A stretch of 64,000 nt of DNA. Origin: Guillardia theta CCMP2712 (taxonomy: Eukaryota; Protista; Cryptophyta). The stretch lies in assembly GCF_000315625.1 (NCBI RefSeq), contig NW_005434618.1, forward strand, positions 17,607 through 81,606. The letters run 5' to 3'. Position numbers and translations under genes: made by a program. The notes under the pieces were generated by a model. That model worked only from the letters and a program-made list of their open reading frames with translations, was not told the origin of the DNA and ran no database searches. Below are positions 3,014 through 40,799 of the stretch, piece after piece (position 1 is the stretch's first letter; the number at the start of each line of letters is the position of its first letter).

Positions 3014-5770
3014 ACCTTCCCATCTTTCAGTCGCAGTCTCGACGTCTTCAGTATCCTATGAACATCCTCTGTGAGATGTTCAATCAAGTGCTTGTCCACC
3101 AGGTCTGCATGGTAGCTACTGCTGGAGAGCAGCATCTGAAGGAACACAAACACGTTGTCAACCATGTACTCTTTCAGCTCCCTGAACGTCTTCTTCCCTT
3201 CTAGCTCATGGTCCTGCCAGTATTTCTCAGCTCGTCACCTCCGTCGGTCAGCTGGACTTGTCCTCACCTCCCTGCTGTGCTCTAGCACAGTGCAGAACTC
3301 TGAGACGTCTCGAGCAAGCAGCCCGATCAGCCCAGCTGCCTCCTCCCCATCCCCGTCCTCTCCCTCCTCCTCCCTCCTCTCTAGCTGGGGGATCTGCCGG
3401 GTGCTGCGGGAGGGGACGAAGCTCCAGAGCTTGTGCTGCTGCTTCTCCAGCTCCGCCACCAGCTTCGCCTGCTGGGTTCGCAGGTGGAGGACGGTGAGCA
3501 GGCGGAGGAAGGCAGCTCGGAGCTTCCTGGATACTGTAAGGGGGACCCGCGGGTCGACCCTGCCATTTCTCCAGCTCCCCCTCAGCAGAGTGTCCATGAT
3601 GTAGTCGCAGGGCACGAAGGAGGAGACGCGGAGCTGGTTGATCTGGTTGTCAAGCGCGCAGTCCGCCAGCAGCTGGACCAGGGAGATGTGCGCGGCAAGT
3701 TTACCGCCGCCCCCGTCGCCGCTTCCCAGCTCGCCCTCCTCCCTCGCCGCCACCATCAGGTCGATCCTCTCCTCCCACTCCACGTCGCTCGACCCCAGCA
3801 GAGGCGCCACGTGCTGCATCCTTAGCAGCGTGTCCAGTACCCGGTCCTGCATCCTCCTGACCGGCTCCCCAGCTACGACCAGCAGGTGCCGAGCTGCCTC
3901 CAACCAGGATGCCTTCCTGTACCCGAACCTCTGCAGCAGCCCCAGCACGGCCCCTAGCACACGCTCCCCCTCCCTCTCCACTACTTCCGCATGCTCCCCA
4001 CAGATAGCAGCGAGCGAGGAAGGTGCGTCGATCCCAGCGAGGCCGATGTGGCTGAGGACGAGATGGAGGTGGTCAGCGAAGAACTCCTGGGCTAGAGGGA
4101 AACCCCAGCAGAGCCCCTGCAGGAAGAGATGCGAGCGCCGGAGGAGCTCTCGAAGGTCTGGGTCAGAGCAGGTGTCCAGCTCGAGCGGATCGTTGGAGCG
4201 GATGCGGCGGAAGGGGAGGGAGAGGAGGAGGAGGAGAAGCCGATGGGTGTCGGTCTTGAAGAAGAGGAGCTGGAGGAGGCGGACTTCCTCCTCCAGCTGG
4301 GGCCCACCATGACGATGGACAGAGAGCATGACGGTCCAGTCCTCGAGGATGCGCTTGCAGGTAGTGGTGGCGTCGAGGCGGAGGAGGGGAACGTCGGAGG
4401 AGAGGAAGGGAGCGGCTCTGCGGAAGTGAAAGATGCTGCTCCTGACGTCGAAGAACCTCCTGGCGAGCTTGAGGTCGACGATGAAGAAGGTGGAGGCAAG
4501 AGCTGTGGGGCAGTGAGAAGGGGAGGAAGTCAAGGAGGGAACAGAGCGAATGAGGAGGAGGAGGAGGAGGAGGAGGAGGAGGAGAGGCAAGGACACGGAG
4601 GGGGAGGGAGAAGAGGAGGGAGGGAGGGCGAGGACAGAGGAGGAGGAGAACGACTCACCCCGTGAGAAGCTCTCTCTCATGCTCTCAAACTTGAGGAGGA
4701 GGCGGAGCGAGCAGTCGACGAGGATGCCATCCTGATACCTGAGAAGGTCGAGGAGGATGCTCGTGTAGCGACCATGCAGGCTCGCTGAAACCTGAGGGAC
4801 AAGTGAGGAGCAGGACGAGCTTGAGGAGAAGGAGGAGGAGGAGGAGGAGGAGAAGCAAGATGCAAATTAGTTCTCACCTGTTCCGCCACCTCCTCCACTT
4901 CACTAGCCCCCCACAGAGGACTCTCCTCCCACGCTCGCATGTCCCGCGCGTACCTCAGCTGCACATTCATTTCTTCCTTCCCCGACACGGCCTTCAACGC
5001 CTTGGAGGAGGGAGGAGGAGCGGGAGGAGCGCGCGGGACCACCGACTCGAAGTCTCCCTCCCCCAGCACAGGCGCGTCAGGCCCCAGCTGGAACAGAGCA
5101 GGAGCGATGCGAGCTTGAACGAGATCCTGAGTAGAGGTCAGTCGCCGCCTTCTGCTACTTGAAAGTCACCTCCCAGGTCCTGAAGGCCGAGCTGAGGAGC
5201 AGCTGGAGTCTGCAGTCGAGGAGGAAGGAGAGGATCTCGCAGCAGACGATCTTGAGGTCCCAGCAGGGGAAGTTGTTAGAGGAGGGGAACAGCCTCGCTG
5301 CCTCCAAGAGCTGCTGAGTGGCTTGCTCCTGCTGCTCTAGACCGTCAGCCCCCAGCCCAACTCACCTTCTCCCATTCCTGAGCCATCGACCCTGCTGCTC
5401 TGCCAATCCCTCCTGTTCTTCTCTTGCTCTTCCATCTTCTTTCTCTCTTGCTCGACTACCTCCTTCCTCATAACCTTCCTAATCCTCACAAGCACTTTCT
5501 CTTGACTCCAACTCCTTGTCTCCTCTGCGTCTCCGAACCGACTCCTTCCTCCTTCCTCCTCGCCATTTTCACCTCAGCTGGTAGCTCGAATGGCAGCTGG
5601 TCTGTCCTGCCGTCCAGAAGGTCAAGTGTGATGCTCTCGAGCTGCACGAGCTTCGCCTCCTCCATCTCCTCCCTCCTCCCCGACTCCTCGTATTTGTGAA
5701 AGCAGCCGACGGTGAGCATGCGCAGACAGAGGTCGGCCAATCTGATGAGGCATGTAAGAGAGGAAACGTG

Positions 5771-28130: not shown

Positions 28131-31775
<3,645 letters not shown>

Positions 31776-32692
31776 CTTCTGGTCCACTGTGACGAGACCT
31801 GCAGAGAAAACATGAGCGGAGTCACGCGGCATGTTGGTGATCGGAAGACATGTTGGTGTTTAGAGCGTCTCGTCAAGAACGTATCATGAGTGCATTTTGA
31901 GATCTCAGTGCATATCAACACTGATATGAAAGCAACAGAATGCCTCTCATCTCCTCTTCTATCTCATCCTGCTGCATCATCCCAGAGTCATCCCCAGAGT
32001 CACGGGACAGGTGCAGGTTTGTCCTACGGCCGAATCCCTCATCTATTCCACGAGGACACTCCTCTATGCAACCTCTCAACCTTCACGACAACTTTCATCT
32101 TTCTCGTCGTGAATCATGTGTCAGACTTCACTCGTGCTCACAACCCCATCAATCTCCCTCTCTCACTCATTCACTTCCCACCGAGCGACCATCCTTGCTT
32201 GACTTTGATTTACATCCAGTTCAGCAGCAAACCTTTCCTATCCGTTTCATGTCTTCCTTCTCCTCCTCATCGTTCCTGCCTTTGCTTCTCTTCCTTCCTC
32301 CTCTCCTTCTCTCTCCTTCTCCCTCTCCCTCCACTCTCTCCGTTCACTACCCATCTCCAGGCGGCCTAAGGGAGACATTGGAATTATGATTACCGGGTAC
32401 TTTTCCTGGTTTGAAGGGGGTAGTAGCTCCAAGGGGGTGGTGGATATAAATGTCACCCTAGGTTCCCTGGGTTGGGTACTAGACTTCAGGGGGTAGTACA
32501 AGGGAAAAGGTGGGGTAGGGGTGTAAAATTCTTTTTTCGAGTAGGGTGGGTATTCTGTAATTGTAGGTAGGGTCATGTTGAACGGGGGGGTTCAATGTCT
32601 CCCTGTGTCAGTCGAAAGACGGGTGGGTGGTGGTTGGGAGGGGGTAGGGGGTGTGGGTGTGACCCAAACTTTTCTCGTACTACAAGATCTGT

Positions 32693-33013: not shown

Positions 33014-35815
33014 ATGGCGGATCCGAGTGATTATGACGCCCTCGATGGTGAGGAGGAGGAGGAGGAGGGGAGAAGATGAGGATGAAGACATTCAATCTCA
33101 TGATCTTTGATGATGATACTTTTATCTACGATCGTCGTTCTGATCTTTTGTTGGTTTCTGCATTAAATTCTTGCATCTTGTTCGCGATAGGTTGCGACTG
33201 AACGTTGATGTGAAGTCGCGATCAAACAGCTGCACTTGATCATCTCGTGGATGATTTGTCATTTCTTTATGTGAAACGAATTGCTAAGAAGTATTCGTGC
33301 TGATGCTGTTGTTGTTGTGAACTTGATCGTGATCAGACTCGTGATCACGATCATCACGGGTGGGATGATGCTTCGTAGGAGATAGGGAGGAAGAGGCAGA
33401 TGCCTCGTGCTGTTGAGCTGACTCAGACCTCTCGCAGATGACAACAACCAGTACAAGTTGCCTGAGAACCCGACGATAACAGACTACGTTCTACACCCTT
33501 ACAGGTAGTCCGACCCCTGATCAGGAGCTGTTTGACTCGGGTATGGCAGGGGGTTGAAGAGTTTCAAAGACACTCTGCTGCACAATTTCGGATGGAAATT
33601 CACCACACAGATCGGCGTCATGTACCTGTTCGTCAAAGGTCTCCTCAACTCCATCATGGGCCTAATCAAGCTCTCCTACTGCAAGAAGTCCCTCCAGATC
33701 GATGGGAACCAGTGCCAGACGATGGTGAGAAGCACGGGCACGAGCATGAGCACGATCATGACGAGCAGTAACATAAGAAGGAGGAGGAGGAGGAGGAGGA
33801 GGAGGAGGAGGAGACGGGAGGAGGGAGGAGGGAAGGAGGAGTGTTAGTGGTAGGTTTGACAGTGCAGTGTCGGTGATGATCTTGTAGGATGCAGGAAGGA
33901 CCAGGGAGAGGGAAGGAGAAGGAGGGAGAGGGAAGGAAGAGGATGGTGATGGGGGGGCATGAGAGGAGTAGGACGAAGGAGAACGGGGATCAGGAGGAGG
34001 GGCTGGTAGACTGACTGGGCTGGTAGATGTCCATAGCCATGACACCCTGGGCGATCAAGGGAGCTATGGGGGTGGTCTCGGACGCTTACCCTCTGCTCGG
34101 CTATCACAAGAAGAGCTACATCATCGCCTCCGCGTTCCTGGGCACCTTCGCATTCTTCATGCTCGCGTCGACCCCTATCCACGTGGCCTGGCTGGCAGCG
34201 ATCTTTCTGTTCCTTGCCAACTTCCAGATCGCCACCTGCGACCTCCTGTGCGAGGGCAAGTACGCTGAGAGGATGCAGGCGAAGCCCAAGACCGGGTCGA
34301 CGATGGTGTCGTTCGTGTGGGGATGCTTCCAGCTCGGGAGCTTCATCGCCTCCGTCTTCGTGGGCCCGATCGCCGACAACTATGACCCTCAGATCATCTT
34401 CTGGGTTTGCATCCCCCTTGCCGCCAGCATCCTTATCCCCACAGTCATGGACTACCTCGGGGACGAGAAGGTGGAGGAGGAGAAGCGGGGGATCGACTGG
34501 TCGCTGCTCAAGGAGCACACGTACATGATCCTCTTCTGCCTGATCATGGCGGCGGTGGCCATGGGCAATGCCATCATCGACCTCCTCCTCTTCCAGTACC
34601 ACCAGGTGCAGGCTCTGTACGCCGTCGTCTGCTCCGTCATCCTCTGTATCCTCGCGTTCCGATGGCTCCCCCCGCAGCTGGCAAGGTGCAACCTGTACAT
34701 GTTCATCTCGTGCGTGCTCTATATCAACATCAGCGGTGCCCAAGACTTCTGGTTCACCGCTGATGACAAGTGCGTCCCCGGAGGCCCGGCGTTCGACTAC
34801 ACCTACTACAACACGTACGCGTCTCTGGTGGGGTCAGTGACTGGATGGATTGGCATCGTTCTCTTCCAGGCGACCATGAGCGACTGGAACTTCCGCACGC
34901 TCTTCTGGGTGACGACGCTGATCCAGATCGTAGCTGCCAGCTTCGACATGCTCATCATAGCGCGAGTGAACATCGCGTGGGGTATCAGCGACAAGGCCTT
35001 CTACATGTTCGGCGATGCCGTGATCGGCAACGTCGTCGGCATGTTCGGCCTCATGCCGATGCTCGTCCTGACCTCGAAGCTCGTGCCCAAGGGCCTGGAG
35101 GCCACCACGTACGCCCTCCTAGCCGGCTTCCAGAACTTCGGGGGTGTCGTGTCGAGCCAGATCGGAGTGTACGCGACGCAGGCGGCAGGGATCAAGACCA
35201 AGGACCCGTGCGACTTCGAGAACCTGAACATGCTCGTGCTCGTGTGCCACTGCTTGCTGCCACTCATCGCCATCCCCCTCACCTTCCTCCTCATCCCGAA
35301 CAAGGTCAGTGAAGGGGAGCTGAGGGGAGGAGGGGAGGGGGGGAGGAGGGGAGGAGGAAGCAGTGGCACACGAGCACGAGCATGTTCAGGTTCTCGAAGT
35401 CGCACGGGTCCTTGGTCTTGATCCCTGCCGCCTGCGGGGAGTAGCAGCACCAGCACCAGCAGGAGCAGGAGAAGAGAAGGAGAAGGAGAAGGAGAAGGAG
35501 AAGGAGAAGGGGAAGGGTGTCTGATGAATTTTGTTTCGCAGAGAATGACGGACAAGCTTATCGACGACGAGGGAAGAGAAATCGAAGACGATCAGGTACA
35601 CTTGTTCGCAAACCGTCTCCCGCCTGCTTTCTTCCTCGTACTCTCCTCCGTCCACCGTGACCCTTGTTCATCCTCATCCCCCTCTTTCTCCCTCCTCATC
35701 CTACTGTTTCCACTTCTCCTCCTCCTCCTCCTCCTGCTCCTCTCCCTCCTCCTCCCTCCTCCTCCTCACCCTGTAGCAGGAGGACTCGCTGCTACAGAAC
35801 CCAGCGAGGAGCTGA
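33014..35815 (+). CDS. Folate-biopterin transporter (BT1/FBT, MFS), multi-exon
   Basis: Motifs PWAIKGAMGVVSDAYPLLGYHKKSY, DLLCEGKYAE and LVPKGLEATTYALLAGFQNFG, with many TM helices. Small 5' exons from ATG 33014 and 3' exons to TGA 35815 were spliced manually. Confidence 0.9.
35177..35436. repeat. Perfect 79-bp inverted repeat (exon 35177-35255; intron 35358-35436)
   Basis: The intronic sequence aagcagtggcacacg...gccgcctgcg is the exact reverse complement of the exonic cgcaggcggc...gccactgctt. Confidence 0.95.
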
Positions 35816-36014
35816 AGGTGAGGCCGACGGCCGACGTGTATCATAGGTTATTCATCCTCGACTCATCACTCAATTAAATCAAGACAACGAATTCAGCATG
35901 ACATGATTTATCAAACTCCTCCTCCTCCTCCTCCTCCTCCTCCTCCTCCTCCTCTCCCTCCTTCTCTTCTTCCTCCTCCCTTATACCTCTCCCCCAACTC
36001 CCTCTTACACCCAC

Positions 36015-39000
36015 CTACTTCACTCCGATGATCTTCTTCGCTACGTCCACGTCGCTCATCCCCTTCCTCGACTCCTCGATCACCGCCATGCTGATCTCGC
36101 TGTATCCCATCTTCCTCGCGTGCTCTTCCGCCTGCTTCTTCGCCGGCCCCCGCACGAAGAACGGCGCTCTCTCCAGCTCCTTCCGGGCTTCCTCCGTCCA
36201 CCTCGGCTCTCTGCCCAGCTGGTGAGCCACCCCTCCACCCCCTCCATCCCTCGCATCACTCACTTGGGTACGGCTGCTCCGTCCCCCGGCAGCGCCGCCA
36301 CTGCCAGCGGCGTCATCTGCTCCTGGGCTCCAGCTGGGGTCGGGGCTGCTGCCAGCCGGTCAGCCGCAAAGTCGTTGAGGGCCGCGTCGAGGCTGTCGAG
36401 GGCCGAGACGCAGCTGGAGACAAACTGGGAGGATACTGGGGAGAACCTGCCGCCATGCAGCGCGACTCGCTCCTCGAGCCGGCAGGCCGTGCGCTGGAGC
36501 AGGATGGAGGACAGGCGGGTCGCGACTGACAGCATGCCGGGCTGCAGCCTCTGCACCCGCTCAACCACCTCCCTCAGCTCCTCCGCACTCTGCGGGAGCC
36601 TCGGCCCCCCGGCACCCAGCAGAGAGCTGAGCTGGGGGAGCTGAGGGGCAGGTGGGACGTCGGCAAGATCGTCGGCGTCGGGGGAGGAGGGCCGAGGGGA
36701 AGAGAAGGACTGCAGGAAGTTCCAGAGCTTCGCCGCCGTCTGCAGAGACGCCTCGTCCTCCTCGTCCGCCGAGATCAGCTCGATGGCGTCGAGGGTGAGC
36801 TCGGCGGGGAGGAAGACTGGGCGGACGAGGTTCTGGAGAGGAGCTGGGAGCTGCTGGGCAAGGGCCTTCTGCTGCTTCAGTGCCTCCACCGCCGCGCTCC
36901 CGATCGGGTTCAGCGTCGCCTGCTTGAGCAAGCTCCTGCCTCCCGCGTCCACGATCGCTGCCAGCTCCTCCAGCAGCACCTGCTGCACGAAGTTGCCCTG
37001 CGGGGAGAGGAGGAGCTCTATGACCTGGTCGGTGGCCCGGTCGAGCCCAGCTGACTTCTCAACTGAGCTCGTGCTGGCGGTGTAGCTCTGGAAGCCCGAG
37101 GAGAGCTCCTTGAGGCGGGCCACGTTGAGCGCTCCTGCTCCCTCCTGCCCCGCCTGAGCCCCGTAGAGCATCTGCCGCAGGGCCTCCTGGGCCCGGGGGG
37201 AGCTGTCGGAGAAGAGCCTCTTGGCGAGGTAGGGGTAGCACTCCTGCGCGATGGAGTAGTCCTCGTCCTGCTGCAGGCCGATACCCTCGAGGACGGAGAA
37301 GGTTCGGAGGATGTAGGCCATCCAAGGGGGGATCTGGAAGTAGTTATTGTCGTCCTCCTGCAGCTGCTCCATCTTCCTTGCCACGTCCCCCACGTTCACT
37401 CGCTCCTCCGTCACCAGCCCCTGCTCGTTCATCTCCTTGAACTTGGCCCGCATCCTCTCCCTGATCTCCTCCCTCGGCAGGTCCCCGAACTCCTCCCTGA
37501 TCTGCTTGATCATCCTCTCCTGCACCTTCTTGGGCCCTCCCCCCATCGCCAGCTGCCGCAAGATCACCGAGAGCGCCTCCACCACCCCAGCTCGCTGGAT
37601 CAGCGCCTCCTTCCCGGCAGGAACGAACCCGAGCTTGATCAGGTCGCGAGGGATCTGCTTGTAGTCCTCGGACATGAGGTGGGCGATGTACTCGATCAAC
37701 GCGTACTGCAGGTCCTTCTCGACCTCGATGCACATCCCAAAGTCGAGGATGCAGAGCTTCCCGTCCTCCGTCCTCAGCAGGTTCCCAGGGTGCGGGTCGC
37801 AGTGCAGCAGCCCGGTGTCCAGCAGCATCGTCAGGTACGCGTTCAGCGCCACCCCGCAAAGTCTTCCCACGTCGTCCTCAGAGCTCTTCTCCAGCCTCTC
37901 CCCGACCACCCAGCGAGTCGTCAGGACCCGCTCAGTCGACAGATCCTCCACAACTTCAGCCGTTGTCACTGCGTCGAGGCCCCGGGCCCTCATGGCGGCG
38001 AGGAAGCGCTGAGAGTTGACGGCCTCTCGCTCGTAGTCGAGCTCGTTGACAAAGCCAGCACCCCTGCCGCAGCGTCACGGGGAGGAAGGAGGGGAGGGGA
38101 TGGAGGATGCGATACACGACTTGTTTGTGGTAGTGGAGCAGGAGCAGGAGCAGGGGCAGGAGCAGGGGCAGGGGCAGGGGCAGGGGCAGGGGCAGGGGCA
38201 GAAGCAGGGGCAGGGGCAGGAGCAGGGGCAGGAGCAGGGGCAGGGGCAGGGGCAGGAACAGCAGGAGCAGGAGCAGGAGCCTAACAATATGAAAGAGTAG
38301 GACGAGGTGGTGGAGCAGTGGAGTGAGACGGGAGATGCAAGGGGAGTTGGGGATGAGGGAGGGGCAGGGACAAGACGGGAGGGTCGTCACCATTCATCGA
38401 TGAGGCCGACGAGGTCGCTGTTGAGCTTGAAGAACTTCTTCCAGAGGGGGGCGATGGTCCTGCAGACGTAGAGGTCGAGCGCGATGTCCTTGATGACGTC
38501 AGGGCGCTGGACTTTGATCGCAACCTCCTGCCCGTCCATGAGCTCCCCCTTGTACACCTGCCCGATGGAGGCGGCGGCGACGGGGGCGCTGGAGACGGTG
38601 CGGAAGATGCCCTTCAGGCTCTTGCCTCCTGTGGAACTGCGGAGTTCCTCCTCTATGATCTCCATGGCGATGTGATTGGGGAAGGGCTTCACTCGGTCCT
38701 GTAGCTCGCTCAGCTCCTTCACGTAGGGAGCAGGGAGGATGTCGCCGCGGATGGAGAGAGCCTGGAAGGTGTCAGGAGGAAACAACAGGCAAGGTAGAGG
38801 AGGGTGAGGACGGCGATACATGGGACAGGGGTACCAGGAGCGGGAGCGGGAGCAGGAGGGAGGAGGGAGGAGGGAGGAGGGGGCATACCTGTCCAATCTT
38901 GATAGCTGTGGTGCCCAAGCGCTGGGTCAGGCCCAGGAGCTGCTTGGCTCTCATCGGCATGTTCTTCTCCCACTTGTTTCCTCGTCCTCCGATCCCCCCA

Positions 39001-39908
39001 TACTCGTACCGATCTCTCAACAACCCGATCCCCCATCCTCCCAGGATATAGGCCAGCTGCACTGCCCTCCCGTACTTGAGAACCCAACGCTTGTTGAAGT
39101 ACCTGTCTGCTGCCGCAGGGTCGTACGTCTTGCCGGGGTAAGGAAGCTCCTCCTCTCTCCTCACCACGGAGGAGAAGGAGACAACAGAGGCGAACCAGAG
39201 GCCAAGGGCCTTGGCGTTGAAGGGATAGCCGTTGAACAAATCGTTGTCACTGTCCCTCGAAACCTCGTGGATAGCAGCGGCAAGCTTGCTGTACAGGATG
39301 GACACAAAGGAGGACAGCTCCTGCTCTGCCAGCTGCACGGGCTTCGGGAGAGCAGCGTTGAGCTCTCTCAGGGCCTTGAGGAGCTGGTCCGCCTTCACCT
39401 CCGCCATGAGCTTCTGCAAATTGCTCTCTATCCCCTTGAGGGGAACCTGAACGCCGCCGACGTACTTGGAGGAGGAGGCCTTCGCTGCGGACAGCAGGGC
39501 CTCCATCTGCTTCAGCACTTGTGCTCCAGCATGGATCACCTGGTCCTTCACTCCCTGCACGCCAGCGGGTCCCGCAGAGGCAGTCGCGTCTGCGAGCAAG
39601 TTGCTGGCGTGCTGGTCGCCAAGATGACGTTGCGCAGGCTCAACGCTCTCTTGGAGCAGCGACAGTCCGTTCATCACCTCGTGAAACCCGTCCATGGCCA
39701 TCAAGCTCAAAGGCCCGACGCCGGGAGCAGCAGAAGGAACCTGGCCGACTCTCCCCTTTCTCTCCAACTTGGTTCTCAGCCCCAAGGTAAACCTGTGATG
39801 CGTGCGAGCTGAGAATTGTGCGGCAAGCGGGGATGATGTGAAGCAGAAAGCTTCGTTCAGACATGCGAGCAGGAGGGCGAGGGCGCATACTCTGCTCGCG
39901 CATAGCAT
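36015..39908 (-). CDS. ABC1/UbiB atypical kinase, plastid-targeted, with a probable C-terminal PCP_red (ChlB/BchB C-terminal) domain
   Basis: Signal peptide ...LNEAFC-F. Motifs LGTTAIKIGQ/ALSIRGDIL, PVAAASIGQVYKG..VAIKVQRP, LLHCDPHPGNLL..ILDFGM. Intron 36263-36211 (GTGAGT...GGCAG) joins AVPK in frame to EPRWTEEARKELERAPFFVRGPAKKQAEEHARKMG. Confidence 0.88.
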
Positions 39909-40490
39909 GCGATCCACCAATCTCCTGCATGTTGCCTTGTACGGAGTTTTGCTGCTCAACGACCTCGTCGTACTGCTGTCTCCCCATGTCGTTCCATGCA
40001 TGCTGGCTACTTCTCCTGCTCTTCCTCGTCCTTCCTCACTTGCTCCTTCCTCCCTCCTCCCTCTTCCTCCTCTTCCTCCTCTTCCTCCCTCGTGACTGCT
40101 GAACATGCGCCTTGTATGCATGCCTCCCTGTCTCTTGTTTGGGTCGCCGTTACTCTTATAACCGACCAACAAACTGCCCCTTATATCTGGCCGGGCCCCC
40201 GGTCGGGGCGGCGGCCGGGCCTCCGGGTCACCGTTGGCACTGACACAGGCTGCGGCCAGACTCAGAGCACTGACTACTGCGGCAGCAGTGACTACTTACA
40301 TCGTGAACTTCGGAACTGGAAGGCTGAACTTGCAATCCGCGGCCGGGGTGGGAGAGGGGGCGCCGGGCCGCCCGGTGGACCGTTTCAGGGCCTGCCATTT
40401 CCGGGAGTGCGGTCAGTGACTCATCCCGGCCGGGTCCGGAGCCGGCTGAGTCAGCGGCTGAGTCACCAGCTGAGTCACCCGGGAGTCCGA

Positions 40491-40655
40491 TCCGGACTCA
40501 CCGTGACAGGGCAGTTTCTCACCGCTGACGGTGCCCCTTTCGTGTAGGATGAATGCGGTAACTCACCGTGACAGGGCAGTTTCTCCGGACTCACCGTGAC
40601 AGGGCAGTTTCTCACCGCTGACGGTGCCCCTTTCGTGTAGGATGAAAAGCGGTAA
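40491..40655. repeat. Nested direct repeats (25-bp unit x3, ~40-bp unit x2) in a divergent promoter region
   Basis: ACTCACCGTGACAGGGCAGTTTCTC occurs three times and ACCGCTGACGGTGCCCCTTTCGTGTAGGATGAA twice. Confidence 0.85.
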
Positions 40656-40799
40656 TCAGTAATCCTGGAATTTCATATACCGGTGCAGCCCCCTGAATCC
40701 CAATATTGGCATCATCCGCGGATCCCCACAACCTCGAACGTGCCGGCCCCCATTCTTGAGTGCCCGACAGCGTTGAGGAAGAGAAAGAGAGGAAGAGGG

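Follow-up and report, generated by a model that had tools for sequence, protein, structure and literature searches.

We describe a gene of the cryptophyte Guillardia theta CCMP2712 in which an exon encoding a PCP_red domain (PF08369) is joined in frame to an ABC1 kinase by a constitutively spliced intron of 53 nucleotides (nt). The gene occupies 40038..35982 on the minus strand of a 64,000-nt stretch of contig NW_005434618.1 (positions 17,607 to 81,606 of the forward strand; hereafter the window, to which all coordinates refer) and has four exons; an initial annotation of the window, made from its letters alone, had covered 36015-37993, which takes in only the last exon and the greater part of exon 3. 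The explanation that we favour overall, with modest confidence, is that this is an expressed four-exon kinase-PCP_red fusion whose product would be imported into the plastid, and in which PCP_red would act as a tethered docking or capping module.

Transcript evidence for the region 35500-40700 came from the assembled contigs of three runs, X1, X2 and X3, which represent three studies, and from a raw-read run, X19. The contigs from X1, X2 and X3 all join position 36264 directly to 36210 and skip the intervening 53 nt (36211-36263), with 185-229 nt flanking this joint on its shorter side. The skipped segment is bounded by CT..AC on the plus strand and so by GT..AG on the minus strand. Two further segments, 38064-38390 (327 nt) and 38762-38888 (127 nt), are skipped by the same contigs, of which that from X1 is 3611 nt long at a depth of 64 and that from X2 is 3504 nt long; since three GT..AG introns are missing from them, the contigs derive from spliced RNA. 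In the bin that contains intron 3, the X1 depth falls from 64 to 44.5, which is the value predicted for zero coverage of the intron. The features of the gene are as follows (UTR, untranslated region; CDS, coding sequence):

38889..40038, minus strand: exon 1, with 5' UTR, CDS taken from the ATG at 40001 and a long N-terminal region; ends in KxGQ (AIKIGQ), phase 0; the contigs reach 40038
39843..39908, minus strand: putative signal peptide M-L-C-A-S-R-V-C-A-L-A-L-L-L-A-C-L-N-E-A-F-C, then Phe and a Ser/Thr/Arg-rich stretch; read from the translation
38762..38888, minus strand: intron 1, 127 nt, GTATGC...TTCCAG; from contigs and splice dinucleotides
38391..38761, minus strand: exon 2, first half of ABC1, with the Ala-rich loop AAASIGQV and the Lys in VAIKVQRP; from Pfam and contigs
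38064..38390, minus strand: intron 2, 327 nt, GTGACG...GCGGCAG; joint present in three runs
36264..38063, minus strand: exon 3, second half of ABC1 (ELDYEREAVN, HCDPHPGN, LDFG), a conserved C-terminal extension of ~460 amino acids (aa) and an Ala/Pro-rich linker
36211..36263, minus strand: intron 3, 53 nt, GTGAGT...GGGCAG, its donor lying over an in-frame TGA; joint present in X1, X2 and X3
35982 (or beyond)..36210, minus strand: exon 4, CDS 36018-36210 (64 codons plus the split Lys), stop 36017-36015, and a short 3' UTR running into a (GGA)n repeat
36072..36200, minus strand: PCP_red (PF08369), residues 4-46 of the exon-4 piece; from Pfam, Protein Data Bank (PDB) matches, the AlphaFold2 model and Foldseek

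The initial annotation had proposed precisely this third intron, with a GTGAGT donor placed over an apparent stop codon, and both the sequence and the contigs agree with it, the latter by carrying the 36264/36210 join. On the minus strand the ABC1 frame ends GCC GTA CCC AAG TGA, and this TGA overlaps the donor AA/GTGAGT (the slash marks the cut), the G of which is at 36263; the acceptor GGGCAG/ ends at 36211. The AA left over from exon 3 and the A at 36210 make up a Lys codon, after which the protein continues as EPRWTEEARKELERAPFFVRG... (EPRWTEE...), and the frame stays open until the stop codon at 36017-36015; were intron 3 left unspliced, the protein would stop directly at ...AVPK. With the exact cuts of introns 1 and 2 set from their splice dinucleotides, the coding parts of the four exons add up to 3477 nt, which divides exactly into 1159 codons. 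An imperfect (CCTGCC/CCTGCT)n microsatellite, at ~38122-38289, makes up half of intron 2.

The existing G. theta protein model for this gene, GUITHDRAFT_51468 (P0011; partial, 449 aa), maps to 39128..37166 as two blocks at 100% identity and a third block at 81% with gaps. It begins inside exon 1 and halts in the middle of exon 3, and so carries neither the C-terminal half of the protein nor the PCP_red exon; we read the 81% block as a sign that the model is likely to omit parts of exon 3.

Kinase, leader and PCP_red domain

The gene is predicted to encode an atypical kinase of the UbiB/ABC1 family, 1159 codons long and with its motifs intact. The ABC1 profile (PF03109; cut-off 22.9 bits) matches exon 2 with 84.2 bits (E 1e-23, profile positions 1-97) and exon 3 with 79.9 bits (E 2.1e-22, positions 128-240); the uncovered positions, 98-127, correspond to the part that is split by intron 2. 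The features that we take to define the UbiB/ABC1 family are KxGQ, an Ala-rich loop replacing the Gly-rich loop, the catalytic Lys and Glu, HxDxHPGN and DFG. The translations contain every one of these motifs, as AIKIGQ (KxGQ), AAASIGQV, VAIKVQRP, ELDYEREAVN, HCDPHPGN and LDFG.

The PF03109 motifs are common to the G. theta protein and to the plastid ABC1K/UbiB atypical kinases (plant ABC1K1/PGR6 and ABC1K3, with COQ8 and UbiB more distant), and the G. theta protein also has a putative leader of plastid type. Its homologues are ABC1Ks of ~900 aa from algae with complex plastids, and those found with exon 3 align to about residue 530-573 of its 599; one of them, from a diatom (P0117), is named 'ABC1K3, chloroplastic' in its source, and no plant sequences occur among the best 120 matches. 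Two features distinguish the G. theta protein from plastid ABC1Ks: it is very long (1159 codons), and it has a C-terminal PCP_red that is missing in 119 of the 120 best homologues.

The first in-frame ATG of the transcript is at 40001, and a second, at 39908, begins a hydrophobic stretch whose last residues, ...NEAFC, precede a Phe. A signal peptide, a Phe and a Ser/Thr/Arg-rich stretch in succession are what we take, given what is known of cryptophyte leaders, to be a putative bipartite leader for a complex plastid of the red type. Because the candidate signal peptide is followed by Phe, we infer that the protein would be imported into the complex plastid.

The exon-4 piece matches PF08369 with 59.3 bits (E 3.9e-16; cut-off 32.5; profile positions 1-43 of 45), and the genome scan gives 58.8 bits at this locus. 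Together with the ABC1 matches and the contigs, this result bears out the proposal of an ABC1 kinase spliced to a genuine PF08369 domain. In the PDB, the piece finds residues 473-520 of BchB (E 7e-6), an isolated PCP_red domain (2KRU) and Asr4154 of Nostoc (2L09). An AlphaFold2 model of the piece, built on a 43-row alignment, has four helices and a mean predicted local distance difference test score (pLDDT) of 88.1. The top three Foldseek matches of this model are 2L09, 2KRU and 2YNM_D (ChlB), with template-modelling (TM) scores of 0.66-0.73, root-mean-square deviations (rmsd) of 1.0-1.6 Å and a probability of 1.00; the E-values are merely 0.02-0.08 because the domain is short.

ChlB/BchB is subunit B of dark-operative protochlorophyllide reductase (DPOR; PDB 3AEK, 2YNM, 2XDQ), and its final ~48 residues are this same domain, with an rmsd of 1.0 Å between 2YNM_D and the G. 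theta model. The motif W..EA...L...PFFVRG..A....E..A...G is also common to the two. Unlike ChlB/BchB, the G. theta protein has neither the nitrogenase-like Oxidored_nitro body nor the NB-cluster ligands, and it is not a DPOR subunit. The second point of comparison is with stand-alone PCP_red (Asr4154, 2L09; bacterial 'PCP reductase family protein'), which has the same helical fold of ~45 residues (TM 0.66, rmsd 1.6 Å); the best of these small proteins are ~45-50% identical to the G. theta domain. They are free proteins of 56-110 aa, whereas the G. theta domain is tethered to a kinase and is followed by an extra, fourth helix (SDVDVAKKII), which it has in common with the fragment P0138.

Function of the domain in an alga without DPOR

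The initial annotation had raised the status of plastid chlB, and the answer is on record: chlB, chlL and chlN have been completely lost from the G. theta plastid (PMC5534331). Our scans of the nuclear assembly (87.1 Mb in 669 contigs) found no match to Oxidored_nitro (PF00148), and there was none in any exon of the gene either; the same scans gave a single match to PF08369, at this locus.

An exhaustive HMMER search with the 64-aa exon-4 piece indicates that PCP_red keeps varied company elsewhere. The strongest matches are prokaryotic proteins in which two to six tandem PCP_red domains lie beside Usp and rubredoxin-like, radical-SAM/SPASM or RAMA domains. The best single-domain matches, at ~50% identity, are the short proteins P0184, P0191 and P0194 and the fused fragments P0138, P0219 and P0224; full-length ChlB proteins stand low in the ranking. 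The non-phototrophs Methylomirabilis and Nitrospinota have free 'PCP reductase family' proteins. The prokaryotic multi-PCP_red proteins resemble the G. theta protein in using the domain as an add-on beside an unrelated catalytic or nucleotide-binding domain, and differ from it in their tandem repeats and in their partners; per domain, their identity to G. theta is ~35-40%. We also note that P0122, P0124, P0132, P0136, P0257 and others are large prokaryotic proteins with two to six tandem PCP_red domains, and that such architectures did not appear in the papers searched. PCP_red is thus a mobile, promiscuous helical module. Given this mobility, and the loss of DPOR from G. theta, we infer that the domain does not act there as part of DPOR.

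We hypothesize instead that PCP_red, behind its Ala/Pro-rich linker, would be a flexibly tethered docking or capping module that brings the ABC1K to a partner protein or to a hydrophobic ligand; alternatively, it would fold back on the kinase and gate it. A docking or capping role appears more likely, by parallel with the C-terminal domain of ChlB.

Several points weigh against or limit our reading of an expressed, plastid-imported fusion with a docking or capping domain. In the 3AEK study, the C-terminal domain of BchB reportedly helps to close the pigment pocket of the neighbouring enzyme half, and this parallel motivates a role as a lid or docking element but does not prove it. Either 40001 or 39908 may be the start codon, and the leader is a putative one, read by eye. 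Finally, 24 transcript-like contigs of P0004, a cryptophyte sequence that groups with Rhodomonas, end in a stop codon and ~300 nt without PCP_red.

A different account is tetrapyrrole sensing, in which the domain would descend from chlB or from a plastid PCP_red gene and would still bind protochlorophyllide or a pigment related to it, such that the ABC1K responds to the levels of chlorophyll precursors. This account is unlikely in our view, and yet it has points in its favour: the best-known home of the domain is ChlB/BchB, where both sequence and fold find their match; the ongoing loss of DPOR among cryptophytes would be a source of the freed domain; and plant plastid ABC1Ks act in prenyl-lipid and pigment homeostasis. 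However, we know of no pigment binding by PCP_red alone, and the domain occurs in Methylomirabilis and Nitrospinota and in the company of Usp, radical-SAM/SPASM, rubredoxin-like and RAMA domains. The low rank of full-length ChlB among the matches also speaks against this account, and a domain of 45 residues cannot resolve its own origin. The initial annotation had suggested a link to tetrapyrrole or redox partners; because G. theta has no DPOR (PMC5534331) and PCP_red is found in non-phototrophs with unrelated partners, the link to tetrapyrroles is not established.

Possible isoforms, distribution and age of the fusion

Intron 3 could also be a switch, its retention giving rise to a kinase-only protein that ends at AVPK and exists beside the fused form; the initial annotation had foreseen such an isoform. 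The donor overlaps an in-frame TGA, hence retention would truncate the protein cleanly, and the related cryptophyte sequence P0004 does represent a protein made without PCP_red. Against this, the spliced form is the sole form in three assemblies from three studies, and X1 has an intron depth of zero. The contigs listed for X1, X2 and X3, which may miss rare forms, include no case of intron-3 retention and no alternative acceptor. We consider regulated isoforms to be quite unlikely.

The fused protein has counterparts elsewhere. When the best 120 relatives of exon 3 were compared with the PCP_red piece, one matched, P0056, a protein of 656 aa (ABC1 at 15-251; PCP_red at 610-653, 46.6 bits) that already bears both Pfam labels in a public collection. 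The HMMER search added three fragments, P0224, P0251 and P0138, in which an ABC1K tail (...ALDSLD.AL.DF...) and PCP_red lie in a single open frame, and also P0121, a 93%-identical copy that includes the intron end and looks like a genomic open reading frame (ORF) of an organism closely related to G. theta. The metagenomic contigs L005 and L004 both encode ABC1Ks that are 65% identical to exon 3, with a PCP_red segment ~690 nt downstream on the same strand. In these contigs PCP_red already begins at the end of the exon with the ABC1K tail, as ...LQWSKEAQ (the donor in L005 is /GTAGCC); there follow a GT..AG intron, the acceptor ...GCGCAG/ and the next exon, AELDRAPFFVKG. The intron positions in L005 and L004 differ from those in Guillardia, which favours an old origin of the fusion over a recent accident. 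Within the 96-nt PCP_red exon, L005 and L004 differ at five bases, all of them third positions and all synonymous, and the Pfam core residues of PCP_red are preserved; the domain is under purifying selection in these relatives. The tail of P0001, which reads ...VWSKGAQ and is followed by the contig end 29 nt on, is only suggestive of the same fusion, as the donor site was not identified.

A search with the PCP_red end of P0056 gave no match besides P0056 itself, and an Atlas look-alike search with P0056 returned ordinary ABC1K clusters only, none with PF08369 among clusters of at least 50 members. In a quick tree, a group with a value of 98 in the Shimodaira-Hasegawa-like approximate likelihood ratio test (SH-aLRT) contains the cryptophyte sequences, a chlorarachniophyte group and, on long branches, a pair formed by P0056 and Pavlova lutheri; within the cryptophyte clade, G. 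theta joins P0001-P0003 at an SH-aLRT of 80 only. Among the best 120 relatives, PCP_red is absent from the complete ABC1K proteins of chlorarachniophytes, of the haptophyte Prymnesium and of diatoms. Since P0004 and these other complete proteins are without PCP_red, the fusion is patchily distributed and the domain is dispensable for the core function of the kinase.

By their sequences, cryptophyte-like algae and one pavlovophyte-like organism share the fusion. The earlier remark that no such fusion was known holds for the papers searched, which describe neither the fusion nor a function for the free PCP_red domain; it does not extend to uniqueness, given the other cryptophyte-like sequences and one more distant alga. 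This is a new architecture made from two known families.

It is conceivable that a stray PCP_red piece became a functionless terminal exon by chance, and the position of the domain at the very end of the protein, behind a flexible linker, would suit such neutral capture, as would its absence from most homologues, the complete chlorarachniophyte, haptophyte and diatom proteins included. We nevertheless consider it very unlikely: the fusion has been kept across lineages whose kinases are 45-65% identical and whose intron positions differ, all five L004-L005 substitutions are synonymous, and the Pfam core residues have been preserved. That we are dealing with two separate genes or a chimeric assembly, to which the stop codon at the donor is the sole pointer beside a partial reference model that lacks the end of the gene, is for practical purposes already refuted, because single contigs from three independent runs span all four exons at even depth and uninterrupted natural ORFs of other organisms hold both parts.

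Neighbouring genes and wider meaning

The 3' ends of the gene and of its plus-strand neighbour (ORF 34027..35421) converge. Reads from X19 carry an untemplated run of A after 35891 on the plus strand, which marks this position as the poly(A) site of the neighbour gene, ~90 nt from the end of the ABC1K contig at 35982; a (GGA)n/(CCT)n repeat fills 35908-35981 between the two transcript ends. The X19 reads are restricted to the 3' end of the neighbour gene, and X19 resembles a 3'-end library. Inside the same neighbour gene there is an inverted duplicate: the ORFs at 35119-35250 (minus strand) and 35363-35524 (plus strand) have the same first 25 residues (MAHEHEHVQVLEVARVLGLDPCRLR). A second, distinct ABC1K gene lies on the minus strand at 30600-31832 of the window (ORF 31056..31832, with more ABC1 pieces at 30601-30833), ~4 kb downstream of the gene studied here, whose strand it shares; a plus-strand transporter-like gene separates the two. 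There is a run of N near 29500-29600.

PCP_red is also found with a fibrillin. CYMTET_16429 (P0219), a partial protein of the green alga Cymbomonas tetramitiformis (L010, LGRX02007225.1, 4801-5915), contains the C-terminal end of PAP_fibrillin (27.7 bits, cut-off 22) and a PCP_red domain (55.8 bits) of the subtype 'DRAPFFVKD', which is that of the ABC1K fusions; the join between the two is a predicted splice of exons 4801-4869 and 5153-5269 of L010. In plants, fibrillins and ABC1Ks are core plastoglobule proteins. A broader proposal, which we offer as a long shot, is that algal PCP_red serves to target or load the proteins of lipid-pigment particles in the plastid (plastoglobules or eyespot-like bodies): it would have been fused independently to ABC1K in cryptophytes and a pavlovophyte-like alga and to fibrillin in Cymbomonas, on account of a shared partner or planar hydrophobic ligand, a role that would have outlived the loss of DPOR in Guillardia.

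To our knowledge, PCP_red has solved structures and no assigned function outside DPOR, and no study has dealt with its stand-alone or fused forms. In G. theta the domain is retained under purifying selection, on a putative plastid ABC1 kinase, in an alga that has no DPOR; we conclude that it therefore has a DPOR-independent role there. The four-exon gene model corrects the G. theta reference annotation, in which the existing partial model omits the C-terminal half of the protein. With a single such domain on a single enzyme, in a sequenced model cryptophyte, the fusion offers a tractable handle on what PCP_red binds, and it bears on how plastid ABC1Ks may be recruited or gated.

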